NCBI GenBank assembly: GCA_025558095.1
Contig: JAIVFI010000002.1
Span: 868,001-932,000, forward strand
Length of the DNA: 64,000 bases
Reading direction: 5' to 3'
DNA from: Hyaloraphidium curvatum SAG 235-1
Lineage: Eukaryota; Fungi; Monoblepharomycota
Every line of letters starts with the position of its first letter. Within the stretch, counting starts at the first letter, position 1. The translations under genes were made by a program, and so were the position numbers. This document shows positions 11,723 to 29,186 of this stretch, in pieces. The notes beneath the pieces were generated by a model, which worked only from the letters and a program-made list of their open reading frames with translations, searched no databases and had not been told where the DNA came from.

Positions 11723-14503
11723 CTAATCGCTCATGTCCTCCGCCTCGTTCTGGAGGCGCTCGATCTGGTCCTTGATGACCGAAGACTTGCCGTTGCTGCC
11801 GCGGGTATCGGACTTGGTGAAGGCAAGCAGGGCGTTGCGGTTGTCGCCGAGCGCCCGGTAGACCTTGCCCATGAGGAAGTAGACGTTGGGCTCCTGCGTG
11901 TAGCCTGACAGGCTCTTGAGCTCCGCCAGGGCCTCCCTGTGCCGGCCGAGCGCCGAGAGCACCTCGGCCTTGGCGAACCGGAACAGCGGGTTCTTTGGCG
12001 ACATCTCCAGGGCCTCTTCGTACTTGAGCAGCGCCTCGTCCTTGCGGTCCGTATTTTGGAGGACCTGAGGTGCGGATTTGAGCCGGGACCAATGGATGCG
12101 GGGCACCGATTCGTACCATGCCGATGTAGTAGGTGAGGATGGGGCTGGCCTTGTTGATCTGCAGCGCGCTTTCGAAGTGGAACTTTGCCATCTGCAGCTT
12201 CTCCTGCCGGTAGAACAGGTAGCCGAGCCCGTACCTTCCGGCAAGTCAGGCGATCGCCAACCCATAAACCATGAAGGCCACCAACCAGGCGTTGTAGTGC
12301 CGCTCGTCGACGCGCAGCGCGCTGCGGAAGCAGCTCTGCGCCTTGTCAAGGTCCTCGTTGGCGATGTACTCGTGCCCGGCGAGCGTGTACGCGTAGGCAA
12401 AGTGCGGGTCGAGCTGGATCGCGCGCTGGAAGCACTTGAGGGCGAGGTCGTGCTCCTGCTTGAGGGAGAAGGAGTTGCCGACGGCGCACCTGGACGACGG
12501 GTTGGCGGGGTGCAGGCGCTTCGGGCGGCGGCGGATCCCACCATGCCTGCGGCCTCTTCTTGTCCAGCTCCACGAGGTCGTGCGCCAGGTAGCTCAGCTC
12601 CACCTCCTTGTGCATGTGCCATAGCGCGACGGAAAACACCTCCATGTCCTCCATCCTGTAGGGTTCCAGCTCCCTGGCCTGCAGGAAGAGCTGCTCGCAC
12701 CGGCGGTACTCGGCCATCTCGAACTGCGCCTTGGCGGCCTGGCAGAGCACCCAGCCCGTGTTGTACTGCTCGGGCTGCGCCGAGGCGAAGCATTCGAAGG
12801 CCTCGCGGCAGCGGAACTGGCAGAGGTGCGCGTAGCCGACGGCGAGGGGACGCAGCATGGCAAAGAGGGCCTCGACGGCGTGGGCGACCTCGGTCCAATC
12901 GATGCCGTCGGCGACGTCGCTGGCCGAGGTGCCCGTCACGGGCTGCAAGAACAATCGGTAAGGGTGCTAGTCAACTTCGGGCCCCGAAAGTGTGCCCACC
13001 GATGCGTCATCCATCTTGATGTCGACATCGGCATCCTTCGAAGGCGCACCCGCGCCCTTGGCCGTCCGCTTCCTGTCCTTGGAGCCCGCCGCGGCCGCCG
13101 GGGCTTCCGCCGCCGCGGGAGGCTTCCCCGCACCCCCGACGGCCCTGGCCGACCTGCGCGTCTGCACGCTCGAGAGGGAGGAAGCGGGCGCGGCCTCTGC
13201 GGCGGTCCTGGTCTGATGCCGGGCGTGAGCGCTGCCCGCGTGCGCCCTCCTGTGCGCAACTTCCCACCTTCCTGGTCTGCGGCGCCGTCTTTGCCGGCTC
13301 GGCGGCGCCCGCGACCCGCTTCGTCTTGGGCGCCGGGGCGGGCTTGGGCGCCGGCGGGGGCTCCAGCTGCGCGGGGGCATTGCTCGCAGGAGGCGCCTCG
13401 GCCGGATCAGGGGGAGTCGATCTCGACCGGGGGCCCGGCAGCGACGAGGAGGAGGAGGCGGCGGAGGTTGCCGGTCCGGCGGCACGCCCGAGCTCCTGGC
13501 CGTTGTGCGGACGCAGGCCGTAGGTGAATGCCGGTCGCCTGGCGGGCAACACGTTGGTGCGACCGGCTGCACAAGAGAGCATCGCAACTCACGGTCGAGA
13601 CTGCGGCGGCGCAGGGGCCTCCAGCATCCCGGACATGTTCTCCCGGCCGGAAACGGAGGGAGGCCGGTCGGGGGCGGTGGTGTGGGAGGACGCGGCGCGA
13701 GGTTGAGAGGAGGAGGAGAAGATGGAGGCCGGGACGAGGCCAGGGATGCCGCGCAGGAAGCGGACCGCCTTGGCGACGTCAAAGATCGAGTCGACGTCGA
13801 CGTCGACGCCTGGCAAACGGGTTTGTTAGGTGAACGCGTCGGAAGCGGGGAGAGGACCGACCCATGTGGCACAGGGATTGGAAGGCGCACCACAGGAACG
13901 GGTTCTCGTCCAGGGCCTGGAAAAAGTACTCCTTGGCCTGTTCCGTCCGGTTCGCGTCCCTAGAAAGAGCAAGAGGTCGGCGTCATTCGGAGTGAGCTGC
14001 CCCGCAGCCTCGGGGTCCCCACTTGCAAATGAATCCGTTCGTGCAGAGCACGGCCGACCGCTCCAGCTCGACCCTGAACGCCGGTTCGACTGCGGCACAG
14101 GCGCACGGGAGCTGAATTAAATACCCCGCACGGTATAGCGGCCCGCCAGCGGCCCACCGATGTTGAACCCGGAGTCCGTGCCGTCGCCGTCCGCCAGCAG
14201 CTCCTGCATGTGGATCTCCGCCTCCTGCAGCCTGCCCAGCGCGCGGCACGCCAGCGCCAGCAGGTAGCGCGACTCCTTGTGGGCCGAGGCGCGCAGCAGC
14301 GCCAGCACCTGCGCGTGCCTGCCCCTGCGCAGGTGCGCAGCGGCCAGCAGGCAGCGCGCGCCGTCGTCGCCGGCCAGCGCGCACAGCCGCTCGGCGAGGA
14401 ACGCGGCGTTGTCCGGCAGCGCGGCGTCGAGCGAGAAGCGCGCCAGCGCGGCGAGCAGCCCGCGGGCCCCCGCGTCGGCCGTCCCGCCCGTGCGCGCCGC
14501 CAT
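11723..14503 (-). CDS. CDC27: Anaphase-promoting complex TPR subunit Cdc27/Apc3/Nuc2; multi-exon
   Basis: NAAFLAERL N-terminus; QYNTGWVLCQ, LEPYRMEDMEVFSVALWH, CAVGNSFSLKQEHD, FAYAYTLAGHEY, RHYNAW TPR motifs. Confidence 0.92.
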
Positions 14504-14670: not shown

Positions 14671-15944
14671 ATGGAGGACCCGCTGCAGCCGCGGGCACGG
14701 ACCTGGGCGGCGGTCGGCGCGTTGCTGCTGCTCGCCGCCTCGATGTCTGCCGTCCCGCGCGACGGGTGGCTGCCCGTGCCGCTCGATCTCCCACAAAGGC
14801 CGCGCCCGCAGATTGCCTCACTTCCCACGCACCCGTCGTGGCGGGACCTGCTCCGCCCGCCGGAGGGCCGCCTCGATCCCGCCCTGCCCCTCGCGGAACG
14901 TGGGCCCTTTTTCGCCATCCAGACGGGTTCCATGCCGTGGTTGGGCAAGGGAATCGGCCATGCGCACTGGGAGATCTTTGAGTGCCTCTCCCTGGCCGCC
15001 TTCTACGCCCCCGTGCGCGAGTTCATCCCTGGGAGGCCGCTTTTTGTCGTACCACCGCTCGTCAGCTGCGGCCACGGCGTGGGGACTCGTTGCGGGGATG
15101 TTTACGGCTTGCACGATGTTCTGGTGGGAACCGAGGTCAACGTCACGCACCAGTCGGTCGAGGTCGCCGTCAAGGCCGGCTTGCTGCGCTCGGTCGATCT
15201 CCCCGGCCCGTTCCACAACGCCACCCTGTTCCGCGCCGCTCTCGAGGAGCTCGCCGCTAAACATGCCGGCCAGGACAACGGCCGCTCGCTCGTCGTGAGA
15301 GGCGTCGAGCTCGGCCCAACGTCGACGTGCACCAGCGGCCTTCCGAATGGGACCCGCAACCTGTGGCCAAGGGGGCTGCGCGGGCCGGCCTACGAGTTTT
15401 ACCGACTGGCACGCCGCCGTCCTCGTGATCTCTAGTGCCACTTTGACTCGCCCGACCGGCTGCACATTGCGGTCCACGTGAGGAGGACCGACTTTCGAGA
15501 CTACGGCCTTGCCGTCCGACGGCTTGGTTCAACGAGGCTCTGGAGCACGTTCTGCGATGGGCCTTTGCGATTCCGCAGGACGTGGGTCGGGAAAAGGACC
15601 TCGCTTCCGCGGATGTCGTCCGGCGGGCCCAGGTGGTCGTTTTCACCGACGGAGCTCTCAAGGACGTCGGGGGCATCGACGCCGGCTTCCCCGCGGGGCT
15701 CGTGCGAATCTTTGCCTCGGACCACCCGCCGCGGCCCACCAACCTCTCTGCTGCCGAGCTGTTCCTGTGGAACCGGACGGCCGACGCCCCGTCGGTGCTG
15801 CACAACCTCGCCTCGGCCGACATCCTCTATAGGCAGGCGCGGACAATTCCGCCAACCGTTCATCCCTCGCCGGGGGGCGAACGGGAGCCCGGCGGGCGCC
15901 GGCTGGAGCACGGGACATCCGAACGGATGCATTTGGCGCAATAA
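14671..15944 (+). pseudogene. Disrupted fucosyltransferase-like (HxRRxD) type II membrane glycosyltransferase
   Basis: N-terminal hydrophobic anchor. In-frame TAG at 15433-15435 just before CHFDSPDRLHIAVHVRRTDF. Frameshift near 15510 into WFNEALEHV..VVVFTDG..VLHNLASADIL, matching motif order in the intact paralogs. Confidence 0.7.
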
Positions 15945-16273
15945 ATGCCGCGGGGAAATGCACTGGTAGTGGGGGGCCGGGGTAGGGGGGCGGGGACAAC
16001 CGGTCGGCGGGCGGCGGAGGGCACGCGAGGGTCCGCCGCGGCCTCCGAAACCTGCGGAAATATCGTGCGCAGCCGTCGGAACGGCCGGCGGGGTCGTACG
16101 GTGCGCTGCCTGCGCGCGATGGGCGGCGGGAGCCGGCGGGTCCGATGCTCGCTGGATGCCGGCCTGCTTCCAACGCGGCGGCGCCCTCTTCCGGCATTTT
16201 CCCGCGCGGGTGCCGGACTTCCGCGGGCATCCGCGCCGCCGGACGGCGAGGGTGGTAAAATGGACCCTATGGA

Positions 16274-16318
16274 CAGCTGAGGACACGGTAGTAGGCTCGA
16301 TTTCTCACACCATTCATT
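16274..16318. repeat. Conserved non-coding element, copy 1
   Basis: cagctgaggacacggtagtaggctcgatttctcacaccattcatt; 43/45 identical to 21109-21153; weaker similarity (atc[c/t]gcgccgccggacgg) ~45 nt upstream. Confidence 0.9.
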
Positions 16319-16415
16319 GTCGGGTGAGGTTGTCTCGCCCGTGGCTGAAGGTTGGGTGAGTTGTCCCGCCCGGGGGTGAAGGTCGGGGGACTTCCCGCCC
16401 ACCATTAATATGCGG

Positions 16416-16680
16416 GTGGACGACCCACTGCAGCCGTGCACAGGGACCTGGGTGCTGGTCGTCGCGTTCCTGCTGCCGCCGCATCGCCGTCCGCCGTGCC
16501 CCGCGACGAGTGGCGGCCCGTGCCGCTGGAGCCTGCGAGGCGGCCGCGCCCGCACAAACCCCCGCGGCTGCCGCCCCCGCTGCAAGGATATCTACGGGAT
16601 GCACGACGTGCTGGTCGGCGCCGAGGTCAACGTGACGCAGGAGACGGTCGAAGCAGCCGTCAAAGGCCGGCGTGCTGCGC
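16416..16680 (+). pseudogene. Internally deleted relic copy of the 5' part of the 14671 glycosyltransferase gene
   Basis: VDDPLQP..TW vs MEDPLQP..TW; CKDIYGMHDVLVGAEVNVTQETVEAAVK vs CGDVYGLHDVLVGTEVNVTHQSVEVAVK; the intervening sequence is deleted. Confidence 0.8.
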
Positions 16681-16858
16681 CATGCCGTCGCTCCACGGTC
16701 AAGTCCCGGCCTCTGGAGGAAACAAACGGAGCGACAAGCGCGGAGAGCACCAATACTAGCAGGACGACAGAAGCTCGCCACCAGGTCATGTGCTTGACTC
16801 GCCGTCGATACAGGTGTGATATCGCGCAGCCGTCATCTTCCAAGTGCGGCGTCCTCCA

Positions 16859-19800
16859 TCACATCAACGCCGCACCGCCCAGGTGCTCCCCAGCGCTGCA
16901 CAACCTCCCGATCGTCCAGTCCAGGTGCTCTCCAAGGGCTGTCGCGTTGACCGCAAAGTCCACCTCTGTCAGCCTGAGTGCGTCGTGCCGATCGCGGCAC
17001 AACAGCACCGGCACCGGGTTGGACTCGAACGGCGCCCACCTGCACCGCCGCGCAACCTCTTCCGCGGCCGCGGGATTCGCCGGCGCATGGCCTGTCGAGA
17101 CCGCGTACACGGCGCCAAGGCGCTCCGCACCACGCTTCCAGAGATCCTCGCGCAAAGCGATTCCGATCTCCAAGATCCCGACAAGGGTTTTGGAAGGCGC
17201 CAGGACAAAGCCGGTAAGATGGCTACCCGTAGGGGTCACCAGCACGTCGAAGGAGGCAAACACGCGGATGTGGTCGGCGGTAGAGAGTGAGACGTTGGCA
17301 GTGACCTCGATCACGGGCAGGGACGTGCGAGCGGCAGCCGCAGCGAGGAGTGCGGGCAGGTTGGATACGTTGCGGGCGTTCCGGCTGGCGGTGCGGCGCC
17401 ACACTGCAATGCGGAGGGAGCGGGAGCGGCACCGCTCGGCGAGCGCGCGGGCTTGGGCCTTTTGGTCGGGGAGGAGGGTGCCGGCGAGCTCAGGTTCTGT
17501 CCGTGCCAGGGCCTCGCGGAACCAGGCATCGTCGCTCGGGTCCAGCATGCCGCCCCAGATATGAGTGAGGAGGAACAGCTCGTCGAAACACGAGATGCCG
17601 CGGGGAACCTGGATCGCCCTGTCCACCGGCACGCTCAGCAGGTCGTTGGACTGCCAGTTCTGGAAGGCAATCTCGGTCAGCCGCCTTCCGAGCCTCCACT
17701 CGGGCCAGCGAGAGTAAGCGGGGCACCAGTTGAAGGCGAGCCGGTCGAAAGGTTGCAGCGGGGGGTTGGGCGGGCGCCTACCCAGCGCGACAGCGGCCGC
17801 CCCGCCAAACATGAGGTGCGCCAGGTTGGGCGTGTCCGGGTAACCGCAATGCGGCAGAAGTGTGCGGCCCCGGTGCCACGTCCGGTTGGCGGTGGCGGCA
17901 ACCACGTCGCGGGCTGCGGGTTCGACCACGAGCGCGGCTGCGAGGTTTTCCAAGGCTTCCGGCCCCACGTCGGCGTCGGCAAAGAAGGCGCCGCCCTTTG
18001 GCATCGCATGCCACCCGTCCGGCACGGCAAAGCACGCGCGGCGAAACCGCAGCAGCCGCGTGTTCCGTATCGGCATTGGCGGCAGCCGAAGTGTGAGGTC
18101 CGAGAACGGAGCATTGTCAGGCTCAGGCTCCGGTGCGGGGACCCCCGAGAGCGCCGCCGGCGGCACGTGCTCCTGCCGGAACGGTGCCTGCCCTCCCGCC
18201 TTTGTCCGCCGGCCTTTTTCGCACAGCCGGCGCAGAGCAAGCTCGATGTCCTTCTTGGCCCGGGCCAAATCCACCTCCACTTTGCCCTCACTCAGCTTGT
18301 GCCGCTCCGCATCCGGCAAGGGGCACTCGATGACCTGGGGTTCCCCAGGCCACACCTCTTTCCACGTGCACTTGGCATCGATCGCTGCCGCAACCCCAGC
18401 GTCCACGGTGCGGTGGCCGGTCGAAACGACGTACACGGATCCCCAAGCATCGGCTTCCTCCTTCCAGAACCTGTCCCGGAGCACGGAACCGAGCTCCACC
18501 CACGCCTTGAGGGGCTTCCCGGGGACCGCCGCGACGGCAGCAAAGTGCGATCCGGGCGGCATCACGAGCACGTCGTACGATGCATGCACGCGAACATGCT
18601 CTGCCGTGCTCGTTTCCGGACTGGTCGATACGATCGCAACCTTTGCCGATGTGAAGCTGCCCAGGAGGTTGGTGAGGCCTTCGACGTTGACGTAGGATCG
18701 GGCGTTCCATTCCGCTTCCGGTCGGGCAAACACCGCGATCCTCAAGCTGTGCGTCGAGCAGCGGTGCAAAAGGCTGTCCAGTAGCTGCATTTCGGAAGGC
18801 AAAAGGTCGCTGCTCGCCTCCGGTACCCTCCTAGCCAGCTCGGTCCGCAGCACTTTGTCGTCTCGTAGGTCCAGAACGAGGCCCCTGAGTTTGGAGGCCA
18901 CCCAGAGCTCCTCGTAGCACGCCGCCTTGGGTTGGAAAGCGGCACGCGAGACATCGTCGGCGAGCATGCCCGACGCCGTCCACGGCGTGAAACTGCTCTC
19001 GATCAGGTGCCTACCGAATTCCCACCCCTTGAACCCGGGGTGGTACGTGCTGCCGTGCCAGGGGCACCAGCTGAACGAAACGTTTCGGAAAACAGGTCTG
19101 GGGCCTGCACTCTCAGGCCAGCGTTCCGAGAGCGAGATTGCGAAAGCCATTCCGAACATGAGATGTGCGAGTTGCGGTGTGGAGGGCCTTACGGGTCGCA
19201 ATCAGCATCACCCAATGTGGACGCGCAGCGAAGAAGCTCACCACTCGCAAACGGGCAGGAACGTTGCACCCGGCACCCAGGTCGGCCGCGTCCCGTTCTC
19301 ACGCCGGCCCCAAGACACCGTGATGTGCTGCACACCTCGCGCAGCGACCATCCTTTCTTCGATCGTTGCCATAGTGGCATTGAACCACAGGTCCGTCGGG
19401 TACGGATGGCCAGGATCACGTGAAGCAAGACACACATTGCGGACGACAGTCAGGCGCCCCAGCCGAGCAGGTGGAGGTTGGAGCAATGCGTCTGCCAACA
19501 GGATATTCCGGATTTCGTGGCGCGCCGAGGCTCCCGATTGCTGTGAGGCGGGTTCTGTTAAATGCTCGAACCTCCAGGTGAGCGCGGAAAGGTGCCGCTG
19601 GACATGTTCCGTCAGGCGGGCCACGTCTTCCTCTTCGTTGCCGCTGGCAACAAAAAAGTCGGGCCTGTTCCTGTCGTAAGGTTGGGTGTGCTGGGGCAGG
19701 ATCACGAGCCCGCGCCCGGGGTCGTGGAGCATGGCAGCCAGCTGAGAAAAGCCCGAGATTGACTGCACCAACACGTCCGCACGGACCAGGGCCTTGAACG

Positions 19801-20776
19801 CATCCAGAGCCTGCGGCCCATCGCCGCTCACATTGACGACATGCCGGGCACGGATGGCATCGAAATCTGACAGGTTCAGTGCCACCACCTTTTCCGGCGG
19901 CACTGCGTCCATGTAGACGGTGATGAATGGCTTCGGAAGCCGGAGTGTTTCCAACGCGGCAGAAAGCGCGTTGCACGCGCCGACGTAGAACGAGTTGGGA
20001 ACGACCCTGCCTGCATGCGGGCCAGGACGCCCAAAAATGTCCCCGCGCCTAATGTGCACCGCGACCTGCAGCTCGCGCGGATCGCATTCGCCGTCCGAGC
20101 ACGGACGCCGCAAAGTCCAAGGCAGCACTTCCGACATTCTGGGCAGCGCATCCGTCGCACGGCCCATGAGCCCTATCGCCTCGGTCAGCCCGAGCAGCAC
20201 CTTCTCCCGGCCCCGAGCTCGCGCCTCCGTGCAGGCTTTGCGGGCAAGGTGAAGGAGCTCGGCACTATTAGGGTGAGTTCTTTCCGGAGGAGGGCGATAG
20301 CATCCGTCCTCGGCCTCGGCCCCCCCGAGGCAAGAGGTATTGTACGACGGCAGCTCAAACAGCGCATTCCATTCCCGTCGAAGCTTCGAGCTGGGCACGT
20401 GGTCGTACCACGGTGCTTCGCGATGTCGGTACCCGCAACCGCTGTTCTTGCAAAACATGAAGAGCTGAACCGATCGCCGGTTGCGGGCTCCGGGTCCGTC
20501 CAAGTAAGTCGGAGCAATTTCGAGCGTTACATTGCAAAACCTCGAAACGTTGTAGCTGGTGGTCGGCGGAGCGCCAGGAATCCGCGTTGCTTCGGGGACC
20601 CTCGTCGACCGAGCCACTGGAGACGCGTCCGACGTGGCAGGAAGGGGCGATTTCACTCGATACGCGTCGAAATGAACCATTGTCCTCTCCTCAGGCGCTC
20701 GGAATAGCGACCAGGCCGCCACCAGCAGTATCGCGGCGGCCCCGAACAAAGGGAGCATCAGCGGATGCCTTGGCAT
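16859..20776 (-). CDS. ~1290-aa tri-domain glycosyltransferase: TM anchor + HIRRGD fucosyltransferase-like domain + two tandem GT61(DUF563)-like domains; one 54-nt intron (19188-19241)
   Basis: ORFs 19238..20776 and 16859..19201 join in frame via GTGAGC...GCTGAT...TAAG intron (CEW|PSTPQLAHLMFG). Motifs: VAVHIRRGD, ADVLVQSISGFS; repeated R..RNVSNL..LL and HIRVFASFDVLVTPTGSHL / HVRVHASYDVLVMPPGSHF. Confidence 0.75.
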
Positions 20777-21108
20777 CCCTCGTCCGATGGTGCCACAGCC
20801 CGACGCACACTAGCATGTGCGCGTCCATAGCCGGTAGCAATGTTTTCCAAACCTCGGGTGGCGCAGGGCGCGGCACGGAGAGTTGGGCATTGTCACGCGC
20901 GCCAGAGGGCCCTCCGCGCGTGCTCCGCGCGCGCAGGCTACTTGACTGCTTCGGCACACTTGCGCGCTTAACAGGCACCGCATCATACATAATCTAATAG
21001 AGAAGTTTATTGGTATCGTTTCGTAGGAAAGAAGTGGGATGCCTCAGCGTGAATGGGCGGATGATCTGCGCCGCCGGACGGGGACGGTTGGTGGATCGAC
21101 GTTGCGGG

Positions 21109-21153
21109 CAGCTGAGGACACGGTAGTGGGCTCCATTTCTCACACCATTCATT
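21109..21153. repeat. Conserved non-coding element, copy 2
   Basis: cagctgaggacacggtagtgggctccatttctcacaccattcatt; 43/45 identical to 16274-16318. Confidence 0.9.
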
Positions 21154-21265
21154 ATCTGATGTCGGTCGGCCAAGTCGAGGTGCTATCGGCCGTTGACGAC
21201 AGTTCAGGACGTTGACGCGGCAGTCTCCGCGACGCGCTCTTCCACGTGCTCGGCTCCGATGGCCG

Positions 21266-22495
21266 ATGGGCCTCTTCGGATCCCGCCGGAGGCTAATCCT
21301 GCTCGGGTTGGCAGCCGCCGCGCTCGTCCTGCTCGCACGCGGGGCCACCGTCGCGGACTCTTCGAACGCGTCAGTTCAACGCGCCAACGACCCCGGAGCT
21401 TTCTCCGCGCCCGCAATCGAAAGTCTTGAACAGAAGCAGATGGCTTCGGTCGCGAATCGCGCCGGCGCATCTTCAGGCCTGAACCTGTCAGAGGCGTGCA
21501 ACGTGACCCTCGCTGTGCATCCCCAGTTCAAGGACGGTGTCGGCGCCCGGAACCGCAGGCGATTGCACCTCTTTATCCTCTCCTTTATCGCCAACTGCGG
21601 CTTCCTAAATCCCCACTACGCCTGGTACGATCATGCGAGGACTGCAGAGGAGGTGGCGGCATGGAATGCTCTCTTTGCGCTGCTCCCGAGCCGGAACACG
21701 GCCTGCACGGGAGCCTCGCAGGCCGAGGACGGCTGCTTTCGGGCAAACCACACCGGATGGGGCGATTTCGGGATGCTCCGGCGCGCGGCGGACTCGGCCT
21801 GCCGCGCAGCATCGCTAGCAGGGACGGACCGCGTGCTCCTCTCGGTATCGGAGCCGGCGATCGTTTTTGACGGCACGAAGTTGCTCGGCATGGCGCCGCC
21901 GATGCAGCCGTTCTTGCCGTGGATCGGCGAACCGCCCTGCCACGGGCAACCCGCGTCCGAGTGCGAGCCCGCCCGGATCCACGTGGCGGTGCACGTTCGG
22001 CGCGGAGATATTCTGGGGAACCCCAGGTTCAAAGGTGTCGCGCTGCCCAACTCGTACTACGTCGCCGTGTGCAACGCGATCGAGTGGGCCCTGGCGGAAA
22101 ACGGCTTGCCCGCCCCGCGGATCCGCATCTTTATGGATAGCGTCCCCGACTCGCTGGCACTGCTGCTCAACCTTTCGGACTTTGACGCCGTGCACGCCCC
22201 GCACACGCTCGAGGTCCGGGGCCAGGAGCACGCGCTGGAGGCGTTCAGGGCGCTCGTCCGCGCGGACATCCTCGTCACTTCGAATTCGGGCTTTTCGACG
22301 GTGCCGGCCATGCTGCACGACCAGGGCCGCGGCATTGTCATTATGCCCTTCAACCCGCCCGCGCCTCGACCGGACTTCTTCCTCGCTTTCGGGAACGAAA
22401 CCCGCGACGCTCCGAGGCTGAAGTACCATTTTGCAAGGTACAGGGCAGCGCTGGAGTGGCGTGCGAGCAGGAAAGGCGTCCCGGGGAGAACATGA
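21266..22495 (+). CDS. Type II membrane fucosyltransferase-like glycosyltransferase, paralog of domain 1 of the 16859-20776 gene; intronless
   Basis: MGLFGSRRRLILLGLAAAALVLL anchor; CNVTL...DGVGARNRR, HVAVHVRRGD, PNSYYVAVCNA, ALEAFRALVRADILVTSNSGFS. Confidence 0.8.
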   Translation: MGLFGSRRRLILLGLAAAALVLLARGATVADSSNASVQRANDPGAFSAPAIESLEQKQMASVANRAGASSGLNLSEACNVTLAVHPQFKDGVGARNRRRLHLFILSFIANCGFLNPHYAWYDHARTAEEVAAWNALFALLPSRNTACTGASQAEDGCFRANHTGWGDFGMLRRAADSACRAASLAGTDRVLLSVSEPAIVFDGTKLLGMAPPMQPFLPWIGEPPCHGQPASECEPARIHVAVHVRRGDILGNPRFKGVALPNSYYVAVCNAIEWALAENGLPAPRIRIFMDSVPDSLALLLNLSDFDAVHAPHTLEVRGQEHALEAFRALVRADILVTSNSGFSTVPAMLHDQGRGIVIMPFNPPAPRPDFFLAFGNETRDAPRLKYHFARYRAALEWRASRKGVPGRT

Positions 22496-23055
22496 CCCGA
22501 TCCCTCTCGCAAGCTGCGATTCGACGAAGCTGTGGTGTGCCCGCGGTCCCGGCATGCCGCCCGCCCTCCCACCCCTCAGCCGTGTTGCCGCCGCCGTCCC
22601 GCTTCATGTCCGCCATTTTGCTGTCCGCCGCCGTCGACCGTGGCTGCGCGGGAGGGGCGCCGAGGGGTGCAGCGCGTGAGGGAGGTCCGACGGGGAGCGG
22701 CGCCGGGTTGCCCCCACCGCGCCCCGTCCCGCCGCCGCGCCGCGCCGCCGCCGCACAGGAACACGCGCGCCGTCACCGCGGTGGTGACCGCCGCCTCCGG
22801 AACCCGCCCAGGTGGACGGGGAGCCCGGTTTGGGCGAGGGGGTGTTGGGCGCGCGCTCCACCCAAAATCTGGCAGGGATCTCACTACCCAGCATGCATTT
22901 CCCAGCGGGTTTTATTGCATGAAAAGCATGCTTCTGCATCTCAACGTCCGAATCCCGCGCGCCGCCGGCGGGCGTCCACGGGGGAAAGAACTGGGCGCGA
23001 AAAGTTATTGTAGCCTGCTGCCCTCTTGGTCGGGGCTCCGCCCCTCGCCCAGACC

Positions 23056-23205
23056 GCTCGCTACGCTCGCGGGGGCCCTCCGCGGCAAAAGCTTGCAGGC
23101 AGGTAGCGGCGGGAGACGTGCGTGCCTGCGGCGGCCGGGTACGTGCCCGCTAACGCGGGGCTCGCTGGCGCTCGCGGGGAAGCTTGCACGCAGGTAGCGG
23201 CGGGG
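23056..23205. repeat. Two tandem degenerate copies of a GC-rich 'gctcgc..gctcgc' repeat
   Basis: 23143-23179 is 36/37 identical to 27635-27671; 23057-23113 resembles 27652-27710. Confidence 0.85.
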
Positions 23206-23313
23206 GGAGCGACCTCCTGAGCCCAGCACCCAACCTGGAATCAGAGACCAATTCGCCGCGCGACCTGGAATCAGTGAACCAGACTCGGTGGTAGCAGGTT
23301 CTCGGGAGCGATT

Positions 23314-24717
23314 TCATTCGAGATATCCGTCAATCCACGATGATCTCCATGATCGCCGCGGCCGCTTCGTCCCATTGTTCTCCTCAGGGTATGCCAGCGT
23401 AACCTTCACCGCCGTCCCGTCCTTCACCTGCCACTCCCCGTCCCACCATCCTCTCATTTCGATCGCCGACATCGTGAAACTGGACCTGGGGTCGCCGATA
23501 AAGTACGTCCCGTGGGACAGAATGATCTTGTCCAAAAAGGCGTGCGCAGACCACTGCGGCGGCCCCGGAAAGTAGGGGACGAGGAAGGGATGGAAAGGAT
23601 CCGGCGAAACGGGTAGAGGGGGATCCGCAGGAGGGATGTGAAAGGGGGTTTCCGTCGCCGCAGAGTCGTTCCGAACGACGGAAGCAGGGTCGCCGTCGTC
23701 CACATCCAAGATGCGCAGCTTCGCGACACGACGGCTTGCAGCTTCAACCGGGCGAAAGAACCGGCACCGCGAAATGCCGGCGACAATCTGCCGGAGCTCG
23801 TCATCATCCCCGTTCGTCGCGACGAAAACGGTCCAGTTGTCCGCCTTCCAGCTCCGCCGCAGGCTCTGCACGTCTTCGATGATCTTGTCCAGCCGTGGAA
23901 GGGGTTTGAAGTCGCCGCGACGGATGTGGAGCGCGATCCAGGGCTCCCCGTTCGGTGCGAGCAGCCCGCGAATGAACCGCCTCGCCGTCTCGAGGTAGCG
24001 TGGATAAGGATACCAAGGACACGGCTTCGTACGCCACGGCGGTGTGGGAGCGCCAACAAGAAAGCTGCTGCCGATCACGAGCACCCGCTTTGACGCATAC
24101 GGTTCCTGGGCCAGTTGCTCGCCCATTTCGCCGCCGTTCCCCGCGTACTTACCGCGCGAAAGGAACATGTAGCCGCCATCGCCGCAGTTGCTGTCGACGA
24201 TGCACTTTGTCAGATTTGCGTAGGTCCAGTTGCGCAGCTGGCCAAAGTCAATGTCGTGGAACTTTTCCCCAACTGGACGGTCCCGGACGTGCACGACATG
24301 GTCCGTGGTCCTGTTGAAAATCGGCTCCACGTCGTCGTACTCTGCGATCCGCAGGCCGCACTTTTCCATGTGCGACGTGTCGAAGAAGCTCGAGCAAGGT
24401 GCAAAGATGCGCCAGGTCATCTGCCAATGCGGGAGCACAAGGGTGCGGTTCAGGCGATTCGCGAGGTACAGCAGCAGGGGCGCGGCGTAGTAGCCGTTGC
24501 TGAAGTAGCCGTAGGCCCCCGAAGTGACGACGAACTTCTCGTCGGGGCCGAACGTTCGCCTCGAAGCGGGTCGCGCGCGAGGCATACTGGCCGCTGCCGG
24601 CCTGCTCGCCTCCAAAGCATTGCGATCCGGGCCGAGAAGAAGCAGACCGGCGGCCAGAAACGCTAAGACCAAGGCGGCCGCCGCCGCCAGATGCGGCAAC
24701 CGGACGGTCGCGGCCAT
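23314..24717 (-). CDS. O-fucosyltransferase-family (GT65/GT68-like) type II membrane protein; intronless
   Basis: TM anchor; GYFSN...LANRLNRTLVLP, WIALHIRRGDF, VFVATN, LDKIILSHGTYFIGDPRSSFT = fucosyltransferase motifs I-III. Alternative ATG at 24756. Confidence 0.82.
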   Translation of the reverse strand: MAATVRLPHLAAAAALVLAFLAAGLLLLGPDRNALEASRPAAASMPRARPASRRTFGPDEKFVVTSGAYGYFSNGYYAAPLLLYLANRLNRTLVLPHWQMTWRIFAPCSSFFDTSHMEKCGLRIAEYDDVEPIFNRTTDHVVHVRDRPVGEKFHDIDFGQLRNWTYANLTKCIVDSNCGDGGYMFLSRGKYAGNGGEMGEQLAQEPYASKRVLVIGSSFLVGAPTPPWRTKPCPWYPYPRYLETARRFIRGLLAPNGEPWIALHIRRGDFKPLPRLDKIIEDVQSLRRSWKADNWTVFVATNGDDDELRQIVAGISRCRFFRPVEAASRRVAKLRILDVDDGDPASVVRNDSAATETPFHIPPADPPLPVSPDPFHPFLVPYFPGPPQWSAHAFLDKIILSHGTYFIGDPRSSFTMSAIEMRGWWDGEWQVKDGTAVKVTLAYPEENNGTKRPRRSWRSSWIDGYLE

Positions 24718-24966
24718 GGGACTGTCTCGGATTTCACGCCGCCGGTCCTCCCACATGGATTATGCCGACCTCGGTGCAGGTCCCGATTTAGACGAGGACT
24801 CTCCAATGCTGGCTGAGCCTCTCGGGCGGCTCGCGATGAGCATAACTTGGCTCTGCGACTCTGGCGGCGGTAGCGGGGCGTGAGTGAACGATTGAACTTG
24901 TATTGACGACCGGACCCGCCACCAACAGCGCCCTGGAATCCGGAGCGGTCGCGCTTACGGGGAAGG

Positions 24967-27390
24967 CTACACGGCGACCCGGCGTGGGCGAAACTTCTCT
25001 ACGAACAGCCCCCTGCCCGCCCTCTTCCACGCCTCCTCCCACCCGCCCCTGAGCGAGCCGGCGGCCCGATCCACAGCGTCCTTCTCCCGCCAGTACCTCG
25101 GGCCCCCAACCGCGGGCCCCCGCGACTCGGCGTACCCGATCCCCAGGCCATCCCTGCCCCGCGACTCGAGGAGGTACGAGCAGGGAGGGAACGCGAGCGC
25201 GGTGCCGTTCATGTGCCGCACCGCGAGCAGCGATATCGTCTCGGGATTGCAGCCCCGTTCTTTGGGGCACCTCCAGAGCAGTCCGATCGCAGAGGCGGGG
25301 TCTGAGTTGGAGAAGAGCGAGGAAACGCCGAGGAGCGCAGGGGCGAGGCGGCGCGGAAAGGCGGTGTGGCGGTCGTTGATGCCCCCCCAGTGCTCCGCAT
25401 CGGGGACAAAGACCGCGTCGCGGTCGACCTCGGCCATCAGACCCAGCGGGGGGTGGGGTGCAATCCAGAGCATGTCCGGTCTGGTTCTGACTACGGTTTG
25501 GTAGCGCTGTCCGGCGCTGCGTTCCCGGTCCAGGATCGCGCGCCAGCACTCCCTATAGTTGAAGTAGTTGCCGAGCATCGAGGCCACCGTCTGGTTCTCG
25601 AGCAGCGGGAGCACCGCATCGGCGGCTGGGAATGTGGCGTGCAGCGCGTTCCGGTCGCGGCCCGAGGCGTCGATGCGCATCCACTCCAGGCCGGGGAGGT
25701 CCGCAACCAGGCGAGCGACCTGCTTTCTGTACACTGCATCGGCGACAACGATGTACGCAAACACGTCCACGCGCCACTGCGCGTCGTCGGTGGGCCAGGG
25801 AGCCTTCAGGCCGCCTAGCAAGTTGGACACGATCGATGAAAAGGTGTCGTTGAAGCTGCGAGCTCCGCCGACAATGCACACGGCTGCCGTGTAGGGTTGA
25901 ATAGGTAGGTCGGCATTGGGATCCTCGAAGGGCCCTGGAGCGGTGGGAGATGCGACTGCGGAAGTACGGGCGCTGGGAAGCGTGGCGCCCGTGTGTGCTG
26001 CCTGCCGCGCCAAATGCATGGCGATGCCAACCGTGCTCTCCAGCTCGTGGTAATAAGAAGCCAGGTGCGCGTGGCAGAATGCCAGTGCTTTTCTCCTCTT
26101 CTTCTTGTGTTCTCCGGCCGCATACAGGGCGCGCAGGGTCGGTATGACCTCCTTGAGGTCCTCTGCCTCCCTGAAGCGCACGCCGTAGGATTCAAATGGC
26201 GCGATCTGCTCAAACGGAGGTACCAGTTGGTCCTGAATGAGGACCGGCACGGCCCCGCTGCAAATGACCTCGACGTAGCGGAGGCTGTACTGCAGATCGC
26301 CGGAAAGGATCAGGGAGAAAACCGAAGACGACAGCAGCTCAAGGTAGTTGAACCTCTTCGCTTCCTGTTCGTTGGCGCTGTCCACGAGTACAATTCCCTC
26401 TGTTTGGTTTGTCGGCAGCAGCTCTTTGATGCGCTTCCTCGCCTTGCCCTTCCGGAAGCTCGCCATGAACGTCAAGAACCAGCGGTAGCCGTCCGGGTCT
26501 TTGAAAGCGGCAGGGCGCTTGACGGGCTCGGCGGGCAAGCCTGCTTTAGCAGTCTCCGCAAAGGGCGGCAGCACTCCGGTCCACGCGTAACCGAACTCGG
26601 GCCTGTATCTGTAGCCCTCAGGCCGGGGCGGGACCAAAGCCGGAGGCATGGATATGTGCCGTGAGGGATCGAAAAAGCTCTTCTTGACCTCCTTATCCGC
26701 CAGAATAAACCTCGGATCCTCCCAAGGTAGCTTTTCGTGCTTGGCGGTCCAGTCGGTCCAGTTGTTTCTCCACCAGAACACGTGTTCCCATTCGTAAGTG
26801 CTCATTAGGAACGCTTTCGTGTGAGCGGGCATCTCTGCGAGTAGCTCCAATGACCTCTCGAGCGTCTCGAATAGGCAGTAATGTCCCGGCACGGCGTAGT
26901 TACGCTCCTTCCCTCCGTATTCAGGAAAGTGGACGTTCCGGGCCAGGAAGGGCGGGAGCATGGCCAAGACTGCCTCGGAAGGATACTCTGTCCTCTGTGG
27001 GTGGTTCGCAAAGAACACGTACGCCACGGATCCGTCGAGATTGAACGCGCACTCCCGGAGCTCTGGCCAGCGAGAGAGCGCTTGCTCCATCGAGAGGAGG
27101 AAGAACTTGGGGCCGCTCCCGCCCGAGCTCCGCTGCTGGAGCAGAGCGAGAGGAGATTGTTCGGAAGAACTGGGACGGATGGGATCCGGAGCACATCGCG
27201 CCGACGCTTCCGCAAGTTCCGGTGGGGGATCCGGTTGGGCAAACGCGTCCCGTTCGTCGCTCCGCCGTCCCTCCGCAGCAAAGTCCGGGCGTCCAAGGGA
27301 AGCAAGGGTACCGAATAGCGCCGAGAGCACCAGTATCAGCAGGAGGCCATGAAGTCGCCACCCGGACATGTCGGCTACAAGGAGAAACAT
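24967..27390 (-). CDS. Exostosin (GT47) domain fused to a second putative glycosyltransferase domain; intronless
   Basis: TM anchor LHGLLLILVLSALFGTL; YLELLSSSVFSLILSGD..SLRYVEVICSGAVPVLIQDQLVPPF (GT47). C-terminal AVCIVGGARSF...YQTVVRTRPD...GGINDR domain. Start codon uncertain (27390 or 27369). Confidence 0.8.
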   Translation of the reverse strand: MFLLVADMSGWRLHGLLLILVLSALFGTLASLGRPDFAAEGRRSDERDAFAQPDPPPELAEASARCAPDPIRPSSSEQSPLALLQQRSSGGSGPKFFLLSMEQALSRWPELRECAFNLDGSVAYVFFANHPQRTEYPSEAVLAMLPPFLARNVHFPEYGGKERNYAVPGHYCLFETLERSLELLAEMPAHTKAFLMSTYEWEHVFWWRNNWTDWTAKHEKLPWEDPRFILADKEVKKSFFDPSRHISMPPALVPPRPEGYRYRPEFGYAWTGVLPPFAETAKAGLPAEPVKRPAAFKDPDGYRWFLTFMASFRKGKARKRIKELLPTNQTEGIVLVDSANEQEAKRFNYLELLSSSVFSLILSGDLQYSLRYVEVICSGAVPVLIQDQLVPPFEQIAPFESYGVRFREAEDLKEVIPTLRALYAAGEHKKKRRKALAFCHAHLASYYHELESTVGIAMHLARQAAHTGATLPSARTSAVASPTAPGPFEDPNADLPIQPYTAAVCIVGGARSFNDTFSSIVSNLLGGLKAPWPTDDAQWRVDVFAYIVVADAVYRKQVARLVADLPGLEWMRIDASGRDRNALHATFPAADAVLPLLENQTVASMLGNYFNYRECWRAILDRERSAGQRYQTVVRTRPDMLWIAPHPPLGLMAEVDRDAVFVPDAEHWGGINDRHTAFPRRLAPALLGVSSLFSNSDPASAIGLLWRCPKERGCNPETISLLAVRHMNGTALAFPPCSYLLESRGRDGLGIGYAESRGPAVGGPRYWREKDAVDRAAGSLRGGWEEAWKRAGRGLFVEKFRPRRVAV

Positions 27391-27623
27391 GCGAAAGGCA
27401 TCCCCCACGGACGAGACGATCGGGCAGGGACCTGGCGAGGGACCGCACGTGCAATGCGATGGAATCGATGCCGCAGCAGGATTCAACGAAACATTCCATC
27501 GAAGCGTTCCATCGAAGCGGTCCGAGCTCAATGCCACGTGTACGAGCACGCCCATATCGCCGCCGCCCAGTGCGAAGAAGCCACGATTCTCCCGCAGCCA
27601 CCATCTCCGATCTCCGCCGCCCA

Positions 27624-27710
27624 CTAGAGCCCCTGTGCCCGCTGACGCGGGGCTCGCTGGCGCTCGCGGGGCCGCTCCGCGGCAAAGCTACATGGGAGGC
27701 AGCGGCGGGG
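27624..27710 (-). mobile_element. Possible Helitron-type 3' terminus / non-autonomous remnant
   Basis: Minus strand reads cccgc-gtca-gcggg (hairpin) + 10 nt + CTAG followed by T; body repeated at 23056-23205. Confidence 0.45.
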
Positions 27711-27744: not shown

Positions 27745-27838
27745 CAGTGTCCGTTCGCGCACCAATGTAGAGTCACAGCGGTGCCAGCTAGCAGTGTCCG
27801 TTCGCGCACCAATGTAGAGTCACAGCCGTGCCAGCTAG
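27745..27838. repeat. 47-bp tandem duplication (2 copies, 1 mismatch)
   Basis: cagtgtccgttcgcgcaccaatgtagagtcacagc[g/c]gtgccagctag at 27745 and 27792. Confidence 0.95.
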
Positions 27839-27846
27839 CATGCCCG

Positions 27847-29186
27847 CTATGAGAGACTCCACGACAGAGTTTGCCCGGCCAGGAACGGCACGAGTGATGC
27901 TTCCTTCCCCTCGTCGTCGACGTACTTCAGCTCGTCCGGGACCACGAACGGCTGGCGCACCAGCCGGATGGTTTCCCGCTTCTGCCCCGAGCCAAATCCG
28001 TAAAATCGGCGGCCGTGGTGGCACGCAAAGTCTTCGAGGCGGTCGAACGCGCCTATGCGGTCCAGGATGTCGGCGAGGTACTGCATCGTGAACGCAGAAG
28101 TGAATACGCCCGCGTTGGACACAGCCGCCTCTTTCTGGCTTTTCGGATGCGGTGCCGAGTCGGTCCCCAGGAAGAAGCGGGGGTGACCTGGGGATGGTGC
28201 GGGAAACCGTTAATAGACGCCCTGCATTCGATGCCACCACATCCCTCTTAAGTCCCGCTACCAAGAGCTCAGATACCGTTGTAGTCATTATTTCAAGATT
28301 CTCGTCACGGGCAGTGCCGAAGAAGTTGCTGTCGATCATCGCTCCCAAGCCACCCATCCACCCATACTACTCACCCGAGCGGACGGTTTCCTGCAGCGCC
28401 TTCCTGTCCTCGGGCAGCTTGGCCACGGGTTTGCAGAAGTTATGCCGATTTGCCGCCCAGTCGTCTATGACGAGGTGGAGGTGGTGCACCGTGATGGTGC
28501 ACCCCACAGTGTCGCCCAAAGACTTGACGGTATCGACAGCGGCCTTGCTCGTGGCGTGCTCGAGAACAATTTTGAGCTTCGGGAAGTCCTTGTGGAGCTG
28601 CACAAGGTGCCCGAGGAACTTCTCCTCGGCGTTCAGAATGGTAATGCCCTGCCGGCACCCGTCAGCCTCTGACTGGTGGGCGGCGCACACCCTGCTCACG
28701 TTGTCGTGGTCGCTGGGAACCTCGCCGTGCAGATTCAGGACCATGCCGTGCTCCTCCATCGCCCGGAAAACGTCGTAGTACGCCGTGTAGCTTTCGATCC
28801 CGCTCTCCGAGTTGGTCGTCACCCCTCTCGGATACGACTTGACGCCCCTGACGCCGGCTTGGGCGGCGGCGGCAATCTCCTGCGGCGTCAGCTCCGGTCC
28901 GAGGTAGAGCGTCATGAGAAAGTCGACGCCGGGCGCGAGGGCCTCCAGCTCCGCCTTGTAGGCCAGCGCCGCCTTTGCGCTCGCCACCGGCGGCTTCAAG
29001 TTCGGCTGCAAGCGGCCTGCTTCATCAGCGGCGCCTCCAGAGCCGGATTCCGCGCCGGCGCACCATCACGTAGGCAAGGTTAGCGCCACCCTGCCGGACC
29101 ATCGGCGTGACGTGGCGCATCATGGCCCCTTGCCGGAGGTGCGTGTGAAAGTCATCCGCAAACGGCACGACGAGCTCGTCCGGCAT
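27847..29186 (-). CDS. URA4: Dihydroorotase (homodimeric type); multi-exon
   Basis: DDFHTHLRQG, GVKSYPRGVTTNSESG, VLNLHGE, IVLEHAT, FCKPVAK, FFLGTDSAPH, AGVFT. Confidence 0.95.
28265..28344 (-). ncRNA. Intronic box C/D snoRNA, snR79-like (18S rRNA 2'-O-methylation guide)
   Basis: Lies in the 187-nt URA4 intron (28188-28374). Terminal stem GAGC/GCTC, C-like box ATGATCG, D box CTGA preceded by GACTACAACGGTAT, antisense to conserved 18S AUACCGU(C/U)GUAGUC. Confidence 0.8.

Follow-up and report, generated by a model that had tools for sequence, protein, structure and literature searches.

To our knowledge, eukaryotic genomes usually do not reveal which Golgi transferases cooperate, and the question addressed here is whether gene position does so in Hyaloraphidium curvatum, an early-diverging freshwater fungus that was once mistaken for an alga. 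The window, that is the whole stretch of 64,000 nucleotides analysed (G000:C2:868001-932000, from a genome assembly of 31.9 Mb in 55 contigs), contains an interval of ~13 kb between CDC27 and URA4 that is occupied exclusively by glycosyltransferase (GT) loci, whose products each have a single membrane anchor at the N-terminus. The clustering of several GT families at this place exceeds chance and is non-random. The interval is read here as a lineage-specific, evolving island of cooperating Golgi-type transferases with two assembly-line fusions, a reading about as likely to be right as wrong. All positions without a contig name are those of the window.

Fused genes and enzyme families of the island

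From left to right the island contains gene A (+), fragment A' (+), BC (-), D (+), E (-) and F (-): four intact genes (BC, D, E and F), two of them fusions, one decayed gene (A) and one fragment (A'). Seven catalytic-type domains are encoded by the intact genes, three by BC, one each by D and E, and two by F. The HxRRxD motif occurs four times, as HVRRTD at 15475-15492 (+), HIRRGD at 20039-20056 (-), HVRRGD at 21992-22009 (+) and HIRRGD at 23911-23928 (-), and an RTRPD motif was located at 25474-25488. An earlier reading of the DNA by a model that saw only the letters (the sequence-only reading) had listed four HxRRxD domains, two GT61 domains, one GT47 and one RTRPD-type domain, and all were found as placed. 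It needs correction in that the HxRRxD gene A is disrupted, a single gene unites the fucosyltransferase (FucT)-like domain with the two GT61 domains, and the truncated copy A' is present as well. Its statement that every gene carries an N-terminal anchor was borne out: according to the hydrophobic segments there is exactly one such anchor per gene and none precedes GT61a, GT61b or DUF7796. A Golgi-type (type II) topology of the island proteins is supported. Hidden Markov model searches with Pfam placed GT61, O-FucT, GT47 and DUF7796 domains above the gathering cut-offs.

The largest gene, BC (20776-16859, -), encodes 1,287 amino acids (aa) in the order FucT-fold, GT61, GT61. Exon 1 (19242..20776, -), defined by its open reading frame (ORF) and by alignment with D, encodes the anchor (residues 6-24), the GT11-like FucT-fold domain (C) and the first ~85 residues of GT61a; residues 427-512 match the GT61 paralog on contig C20, and the C domain and GT61a are joined within this single exon. 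The intron of 54 nt read from the sequence at 19188..19241 (-) has GT..AG borders and is the only one in the island. Exon 2 (16859..19187, -), a 780-aa open frame, encodes the rest of GT61a (~18158-19187) and GT61b (16862-18130) and ends with the stop codon at 16859-16861. The 512-codon ORF 20776-19241 ends in a TGA which sits inside the intron, and removal of the intron gives ...LPVCEW|PSTPQLAHLMFG, in agreement with the uninterrupted paralog on C20 (L004; ...LPNCEWPSSPQVAHLMFG). The spliced sequence was confirmed by script to be open over 1,287 codons, and each exon was used separately in the database searches. GT61b belongs to its family by Pfam (PF04577, 47.7 bits against a cut-off of 27, residues 596-674). 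GT61a, with 15.7 bits, is under the Pfam cut-off, yet it is 36 % identical to GT61b (E 1e-51) and homologous to other GT61 paralogs. The stand-alone gene closest to GT61b lies on C43 (73-74 % identity), and GT61a is 34-42 % identical to the gene on C20. The FucT-fold/GT61/GT61 combination was absent from all relatives examined.

The second fusion, gene F (24967..27369, -), encodes 800 aa, in which the anchor is followed by GT47 (~26001-27120) and then by DUF7796 (~24996-25989), the latter including the RTRPD motif; the 800-aa model stands in NCBI exactly as read. Both domains are members of their Pfam families, GT47 with 49.7 bits for PF03016 (cut-off 33.4; model positions 174-291 of 293) and DUF7796 with 37.2-40.8 bits for PF25072 (cut-off 27; model positions 6-158 of 346 only). 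The closest genes in the genome are those on C39 and C25 for DUF7796 (56-63 % identity) and those on C43 and C27 for GT47 (33-36 %). The look-alikes of DUF7796 in the Atlas are unnamed clusters, mostly from haptophytes and Nucleocytoviricota.

For each of the fused domains the genome contains stand-alone paralogs at other places, all of them single ORFs. Paralogs whose N-terminus was read (GT61 on C20, GT61 on C43, one DUF7796, two GT47 and the paralog of E) keep an anchor of their own. Since the fused domains are devoid of their own anchors, the downstream domains need the first one to reach the secretory pathway. This loss of anchors argues both for genuine fusions and for a shared compartment of the joined domains.

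Gene D (21266..22495, +) encodes an anchored, GT11-like FucT-fold protein of 409 aa with the HVRRGD motif, a paralog of the C domain of BC. C and D are 43-45 % identical and constitute an inverted tandem pair; NCBI holds the D protein exactly as read. An AlphaFold (AF2) model of D was obtained with a predicted local distance difference test (pLDDT) score of 70.8, and AtFUT1, FUT8 and POFUT2 were its best matches in Foldseek. The VIA-align Z values of the model were 11.4 for FUT8, 11.2 and 10.8 for POFUT2, 10.7 for POFUT1, 9.0 for NodZ and 8.8 for AtFUT1, and the nearest shapes in the Atlas were unnamed phage proteins and GT11 clusters. Residues H244, R246, R247 and G248 of motif I are invariant in the alignment of the family (A1). 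Judged by this model, the C/D domain has the GT-B fold of the FucT superfamily with its HxRRxD motif, in agreement with the assignment of HxRRxD to this superfamily in the sequence-only reading. The likeness to GT11 is one of fold and motif only: PF01531 gave 12.5 bits for D, 16.8 bits for the paralog L003 and no match for C, against a cut-off of 23.9, and NCBIfam gave nothing.

A profile built from C, D and two relatives matched 2,175 proteins at E <=1e-3, 33 of them at <=1e-30, and the top matches were unannotated metagenome proteins without a Pfam domain. Relatives of C/D are often fused to other enzymes, namely GT32, GT32 with an FkbM methyltransferase, GT4, GT25 with GT11, or NTP_transf_5; the fused proteins come from metagenomes (P0001, P0014, P0072, P0070, P0083 and P0054). 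A metagenome scan with A1 returned distant matches only, C-terminal and mostly of bacterial type. Word-index homolog searches gave one or two matches each for D, E and DUF7796.

Gene E (23314..24756, -) encodes an anchored protein of 480 aa that belongs to the O-FucT family (PF10250, 35 bits against 31.5); only the N-terminal stretch aligns and the HIRRGD motif is present. Record P0002 of the protein collection is identical to E and is annotated with PF10250. The sole relative outside this genome is P0003 (37 % identity), and a paralog on C11 shares 28-34 % identity with E.

Gene A (14671..15944, +), delimited by tblastn against an intact paralog, encoded an anchored protein with HVRRTD, a motif I of FUT8/FUT2 type. 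Its frame is interrupted by a TAG at 15433-15435 and shifts near 15510-15520; in addition, the gene has lost the SSFS-type motif and part of its C-terminus. The intact paralog of 533 aa lies on contig C8 (L006:1231-2829) and shows 48 % identity in tblastn across two frames; the TAG is aligned with a Gly of this paralog and the frameshift falls between HVRRTDFR and AWFNEALEH. Gene A is apparently decaying, unless assembly errors account for these defects. The A family, which had no Pfam or NCBIfam match, is a distant relative of C/D (E 1.2e-7 with the C/D profile, 4e-5 pairwise), and its look-alikes in the Atlas are GT11, FUT8 and O-FucT clusters. By motif and fold, A, C, D and E belong to the GDP-fucose-type superfamily. 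A' (16410..16670, +) is a truncated copy of the 5' portion of A, internally deleted and frameshifted, as found from repeats, tblastn and a six-frame reading: the direct repeats D2 and D4 connect it with A at 78-83 %, and tblastn gave 52 % identity over 33 aa.

Clustering, flanks and non-coding elements

The families of the island are large in H. curvatum, with at least 21 GT61 loci and at least 10 GT47 loci, the six families together comprising about 50 loci. To estimate the clustering, 50 loci were put at random on 31.9 Mb in 200,000 trials and counted in a span of 13 kb. Three or more loci fell within 13 kb with P 0.009 and four or more with P 5e-5, while five or more were met in 0 of 200,000 trials. 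When the number was raised to 150, to allow for any GT family, P was 0.005 for at least four and 9e-5 for at least five. Random placement does not account for the clustering in this simulation.

The island is not unique, being one of several GT clusters in the genome. A second group on the same contig, at C2:229940-238927 (L079, L080), combines a GT92/GT2-like ORF of 406 aa with two GT64 ORFs, of 909 and 642 aa. The 909-aa ORF has an N-terminal extension of 580 aa of unexplained nature. A third group at C2:302072-333668 (L012, L013, L015) consists of three ORFs of 1,248-1,295 aa in 32 kb, each with a weak central match to GT61. These ORFs have large unexplained N- and C-terminal parts, and a gene for a Zn2Cys6 transcription factor lies between them.

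A comparable arrangement was found in another organism. The metagenome contig L082 (ENA ERZ4198739 NODE_2438, 1-21023, GC 0.59), in which all genes are intronless and anchored, encodes GT47, an FkbM methyltransferase, GT61, GT2, two members of the C/D family (32-33 % identical to C) and four unknown proteins. It has the island's trio of GT47, GT61 and the C/D family together. The two fusions and the recurrence of this trio in an independent island argue that these families cooperate. On another metagenome contig a C/D member lies beside GT32. A search of the literature found nothing on Hyaloraphidium GTs, chytrid GT61 or DUF7796.

The flanks of the island were both matched by phmmer, so that an island of GTs alone between CDC27 and URA4, as first described, is borne out. 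On the left, the C-terminal TPR exon of CDC27/APC3 at 11723..12898 (-) matches residues 678-781 of human CDC27 (E 2e-11; Pfam TPR and ANAPC3), and the gene extends on towards ~14.5 kb. On the right, the central exon of the dihydroorotase gene (URA4) at 28367..29011 (-) matches residues 41-249 of 372 (E 6e-57). The host had rightly been called an early-diverging fungus: among the H. curvatum proteins in NCBI, DFJ74DRAFT_419234 (hypothetical) is a paralog of one island domain, and KAI9018999.1 is another such protein. The GC content varies from 0.58 to 0.74 over the window, with no step where the island begins or ends, and GC at third codon positions (GC3) is 0.70-0.82 in the island genes, inside the range of the host genes of the window (0.62-0.90). 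No RNA family of Rfam was matched within the window.

In ~10.5 kb of island coding sequence there is a single intron. Split structures are found in housekeeping genes: four exon pieces in 1.3 kb make up one copy of the GDP-mannose dehydratase gene, and the dihydroorotase and CDC27 ORFs are partial. The sequence-only reading had set a single intron against intron-rich flanks. The 54-nt intron was indeed the only one, but the contrast is weaker than claimed, as the scattered paralogs of the island genes are likewise single-exon and long exons occur also in non-GT genes of the window, with the entire core of a DEAD-box helicase in one 530-aa ORF. Intron poverty therefore belongs to the GT families and not to the island.

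Comparison of repeats revealed a non-coding element of 98 nt in two copies, one upstream of A' (16229..16326, +) and one in the BC-D spacer upstream of D (21064..21161, +). The copies are 81 % identical with a near-identical core of 45 nt, each lies 100-180 nt before the start codon (of A' and D), and no further copies occur in the 31.9-Mb genome; the element may be a duplicated promoter or 5' untranslated region. Another repeat of 75-80 nt is present downstream of E (copies at 23064..23204, no strand assigned) and upstream of F (27635..27709, likewise). The E-F pair was considered as a mobile unit bracketed by these copies, and this was dropped as specific evidence, the repeat being dispersed in at least 41 genome copies with 75-97 % identity. 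Between F and the dihydroorotase gene a unit of 47 nt stands twice in tandem with 98 % identity (27745-27838).

Pathway unit, duplication hotspot or acquired DNA

The reading of the island as a set of cooperating transferases draws on the domain models, the single anchors, the fusions, the predicted C/D fold, the non-random clustering, contig L082 and the habit of C/D relatives to be fused. It draws further on the 490-bp spacer between the divergent genes BC and D, as a shared promoter region, and on the GDP-mannose 4,6-dehydratase genes of the genome, for donor supply. The island grew by local duplication (C/D, A/A') and took in domains from families found elsewhere as separate anchored genes, whose own anchors were lost on fusion. 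According to the proposed reading, fused and neighbouring enzymes would act in sequence in the secretory pathway on one acceptor class, and their product would be a branched hetero-oligosaccharide or a polysaccharide side chain. The C, D and E domains would use a GDP-deoxyhexose such as GDP-fucose, and the GT61, GT47 and DUF7796 domains would transfer different sugars. The clustered pathway proposed in the sequence-only reading is on the whole partly supported, the GT-only island, the type II topology, the C/D fold, the clustering, the fusions and the L082 trio speaking for it.

Supply of the donor is conceivable in this host. Two intron-split copies of GDP-mannose 4,6-dehydratase are present, at C18:323759-325065 (four exon pieces) and C24:228139-229243 (two) (L016, L017), and the de novo route to GDP-fucose is present in Chytridiomycota according to a published survey (PMC10481521). 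Fucose as the donor sugar of the intact C, D and E domains is plausible, and it is a reasonable guess, not a result.

A number of findings weigh against a joint pathway, and they begin with this sugar. The donor sugar is not readable from sequence, PF10250 proteins include the plant GT106 rhamnosyltransferases, and the FucT superfamily also holds transferases for sugars other than fucose. The island carries neither a nucleotide-sugar synthesis gene nor a transporter gene, and it includes the decayed gene A and the fragment A'. No motif of at least 9 nt is common to three or more of the island upstream regions. The best relative of C/D, P0004, had no GT neighbours on its short contig, and the 37 % relative of E (L008) had no island-type neighbours on a contig of 8 kb. 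Finally, the AF2 model of DUF7796, made from an alignment of three sequences, reached a pLDDT of 43.5, too poor for a fold search, so that this domain is only a putative transferase.

Several of these points fit equally the main rival of the pathway reading, a duplication hotspot with birth and death of genes. In such a neighbourhood GT families would pile up, fuse and decay at a duplication-prone spot, the enzymes would act on different glycans, and nothing about function would follow from their being neighbours. This is a real possibility, though we consider it improbable on balance. As an alternative put forward in the sequence-only reading it was partly right, since a decayed gene and its fragment are present, C and D form a tandem pair in inverted orientation (43-45 % identity) and GT61b, so similar to its C43 counterpart (73-74 %), must be a recent copy. 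The size of the GT61 and GT47 families, the dispersed repeats within the island and the lack of a common upstream motif likewise speak for it. It explains less well that five different families adjoin instead of one, with the P of 5e-5 for four or more loci in 13 kb, or that GT47, GT61 and C/D are clustered also in the unrelated contig L082. Moreover, in-frame fusions devoid of anchors work only with domains that are active in the same compartment.

Acquisition from outside, whether by retroposition or by horizontal transfer from an alga, a bacterium or a giant virus, would account for the lack of introns and for the families of plant, animal and virus type. The island genes are intronless in this sense, and the DUF7796 look-alikes are mostly in haptophyte and Nucleocytoviricota clusters. 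Many bacterial metagenome proteins and two viral contigs share 25-35 % identity with the C-terminal half of C/D, and among Atlas shapes the closest belong to GT11-like proteins of phages and bacteria. Nevertheless, such an origin appears very unlikely: GC and GC3 are in the range of the neighbouring host genes, each domain has equally intronless paralogs on other contigs, host dispersed repeats and an intron of spliceosomal type are found inside the island, and the viral scan gave no close relative. If a transfer took place at all, it would be an old one and would apply to the families rather than to the island. A recent horizontal or viral origin, as raised in the sequence-only reading, is unsupported in view of the host-like GC3 and of paralogs spread over many contigs. 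A viral origin was rejected as unsupported, the viral scans having produced only two distant matches to the C/D C-terminus and none to DUF7796.

One further possibility concerns gene F alone. As an exostosin-like co-polymerase it would alternate two sugars with its GT47 and C-terminal domains to give a repeating disaccharide, and the other island enzymes would decorate the polymer. F shares its domain order with EXT proteins, GT47 coming first and a further catalytic-type domain behind it within a single anchored chain, and in the low-confidence model the first half of DUF7796 has a beta-alpha-beta pattern with RTRPD right after a strand. This role is nonetheless doubtful, since the Pfam search of F gave no match to GT64 (PF09258) and hence no EXT-type GT47+GT64 pair, the DUF7796 model is unreliable, its profile had no meaningful match in the PDB, and the phmmer match of the GT47 domain to that of EXT2 is weak (E 0.004). 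GT64 genes do occur elsewhere in the H. curvatum genome.

Significance and comparison with known systems

If islands of this kind were pathway units, gene position would predict the enzymes of one glycan, and a eukaryotic counterpart to bacterial polysaccharide loci would be at hand. H. curvatum would then give ready groupings of the plant- and animal-type GT47, GT61 and FucT-fold families for decoding their specificities. Its naturally fused enzymes would lend themselves to making glycans, and the islands would open a way into the chemistry of the wall or sheath in this early-diverging lineage. A bolder version can be offered only tentatively, and we would rather expect it to fail in some part: H. 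curvatum and at least one uncultured eukaryote would possess operon-like islands of mixed GTs for Golgi glycans, in which anchor-less fusions are assembly-line enzymes, each making a defined oligosaccharide, and which would include an undescribed GT11-like fucosyltransferase family in fungi. The C/D family, a large unannotated relative of GT11 (the 2,175 profile matches) with no Pfam model, is of interest in itself, as it occurs in a kingdom in which a survey of fucose metabolism reported no GT11 homologs (PMC10481521).

The island enzymes resemble the FucT superfamily (GT11, GT23, GT37, GT65, GT68) in the HxRRxD motif of A, C, D and E and in the D model, which fits best to FUT8, POFUT2, POFUT1, NodZ and AtFUT1. 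They differ in that C/D and A are under every Pfam cut-off (12.5-16.8 bits for GT11 against 23.9). Enzymes of GT61 and GT47 are familiar from plants and animals, for example the xylan arabinosyl- and xylosyltransferases, the N-glycan beta-1,2-xylosyltransferase and EOGT, and MUR3, IRX10 and ARAD. Family membership in Pfam and Golgi-type topology are common to these and the island proteins, whereas the island sequences are very divergent, align to the Pfam models in part and are fused to other domains. EXT1 and EXT2, the GT47-GT64 bifunctional polymerases of heparan sulfate, similarly have several catalytic domains per type II protein, with GT47 on the N-terminal side as in F, but the second domain of F is DUF7796 and not GT64, and BC joins FucT-fold, GT61 and GT61.

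As in bacterial O-antigen and capsule loci, many different GT genes stand side by side, intronless and with GT11-like enzymes among them. Unlike those loci, the island is nuclear, its monocistronic genes have their own signal anchors, one intron of spliceosomal type is present, and genes for a flippase, a polymerase or export are absent. The closest fungal parallel is the five-gene cluster for galactosaminogalactan in Aspergillus, also a physical gene cluster in a fungus for one extracellular glycan (PMC8224951). The genes of that cluster, which are proven to be co-regulated, encode an epimerase, a synthase, hydrolases and a deacetylase (PMC8224951), whereas the island, known from its sequence, consists of type II transferases alone, of other families, and contains no precursor or trimming enzymes. 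The Aspergillus example demonstrates that eukaryotic glycan pathways can be clustered. Fungal glycan gene clusters are thus already known, and the composition of GTs alone, with fusions, is a variant of them.

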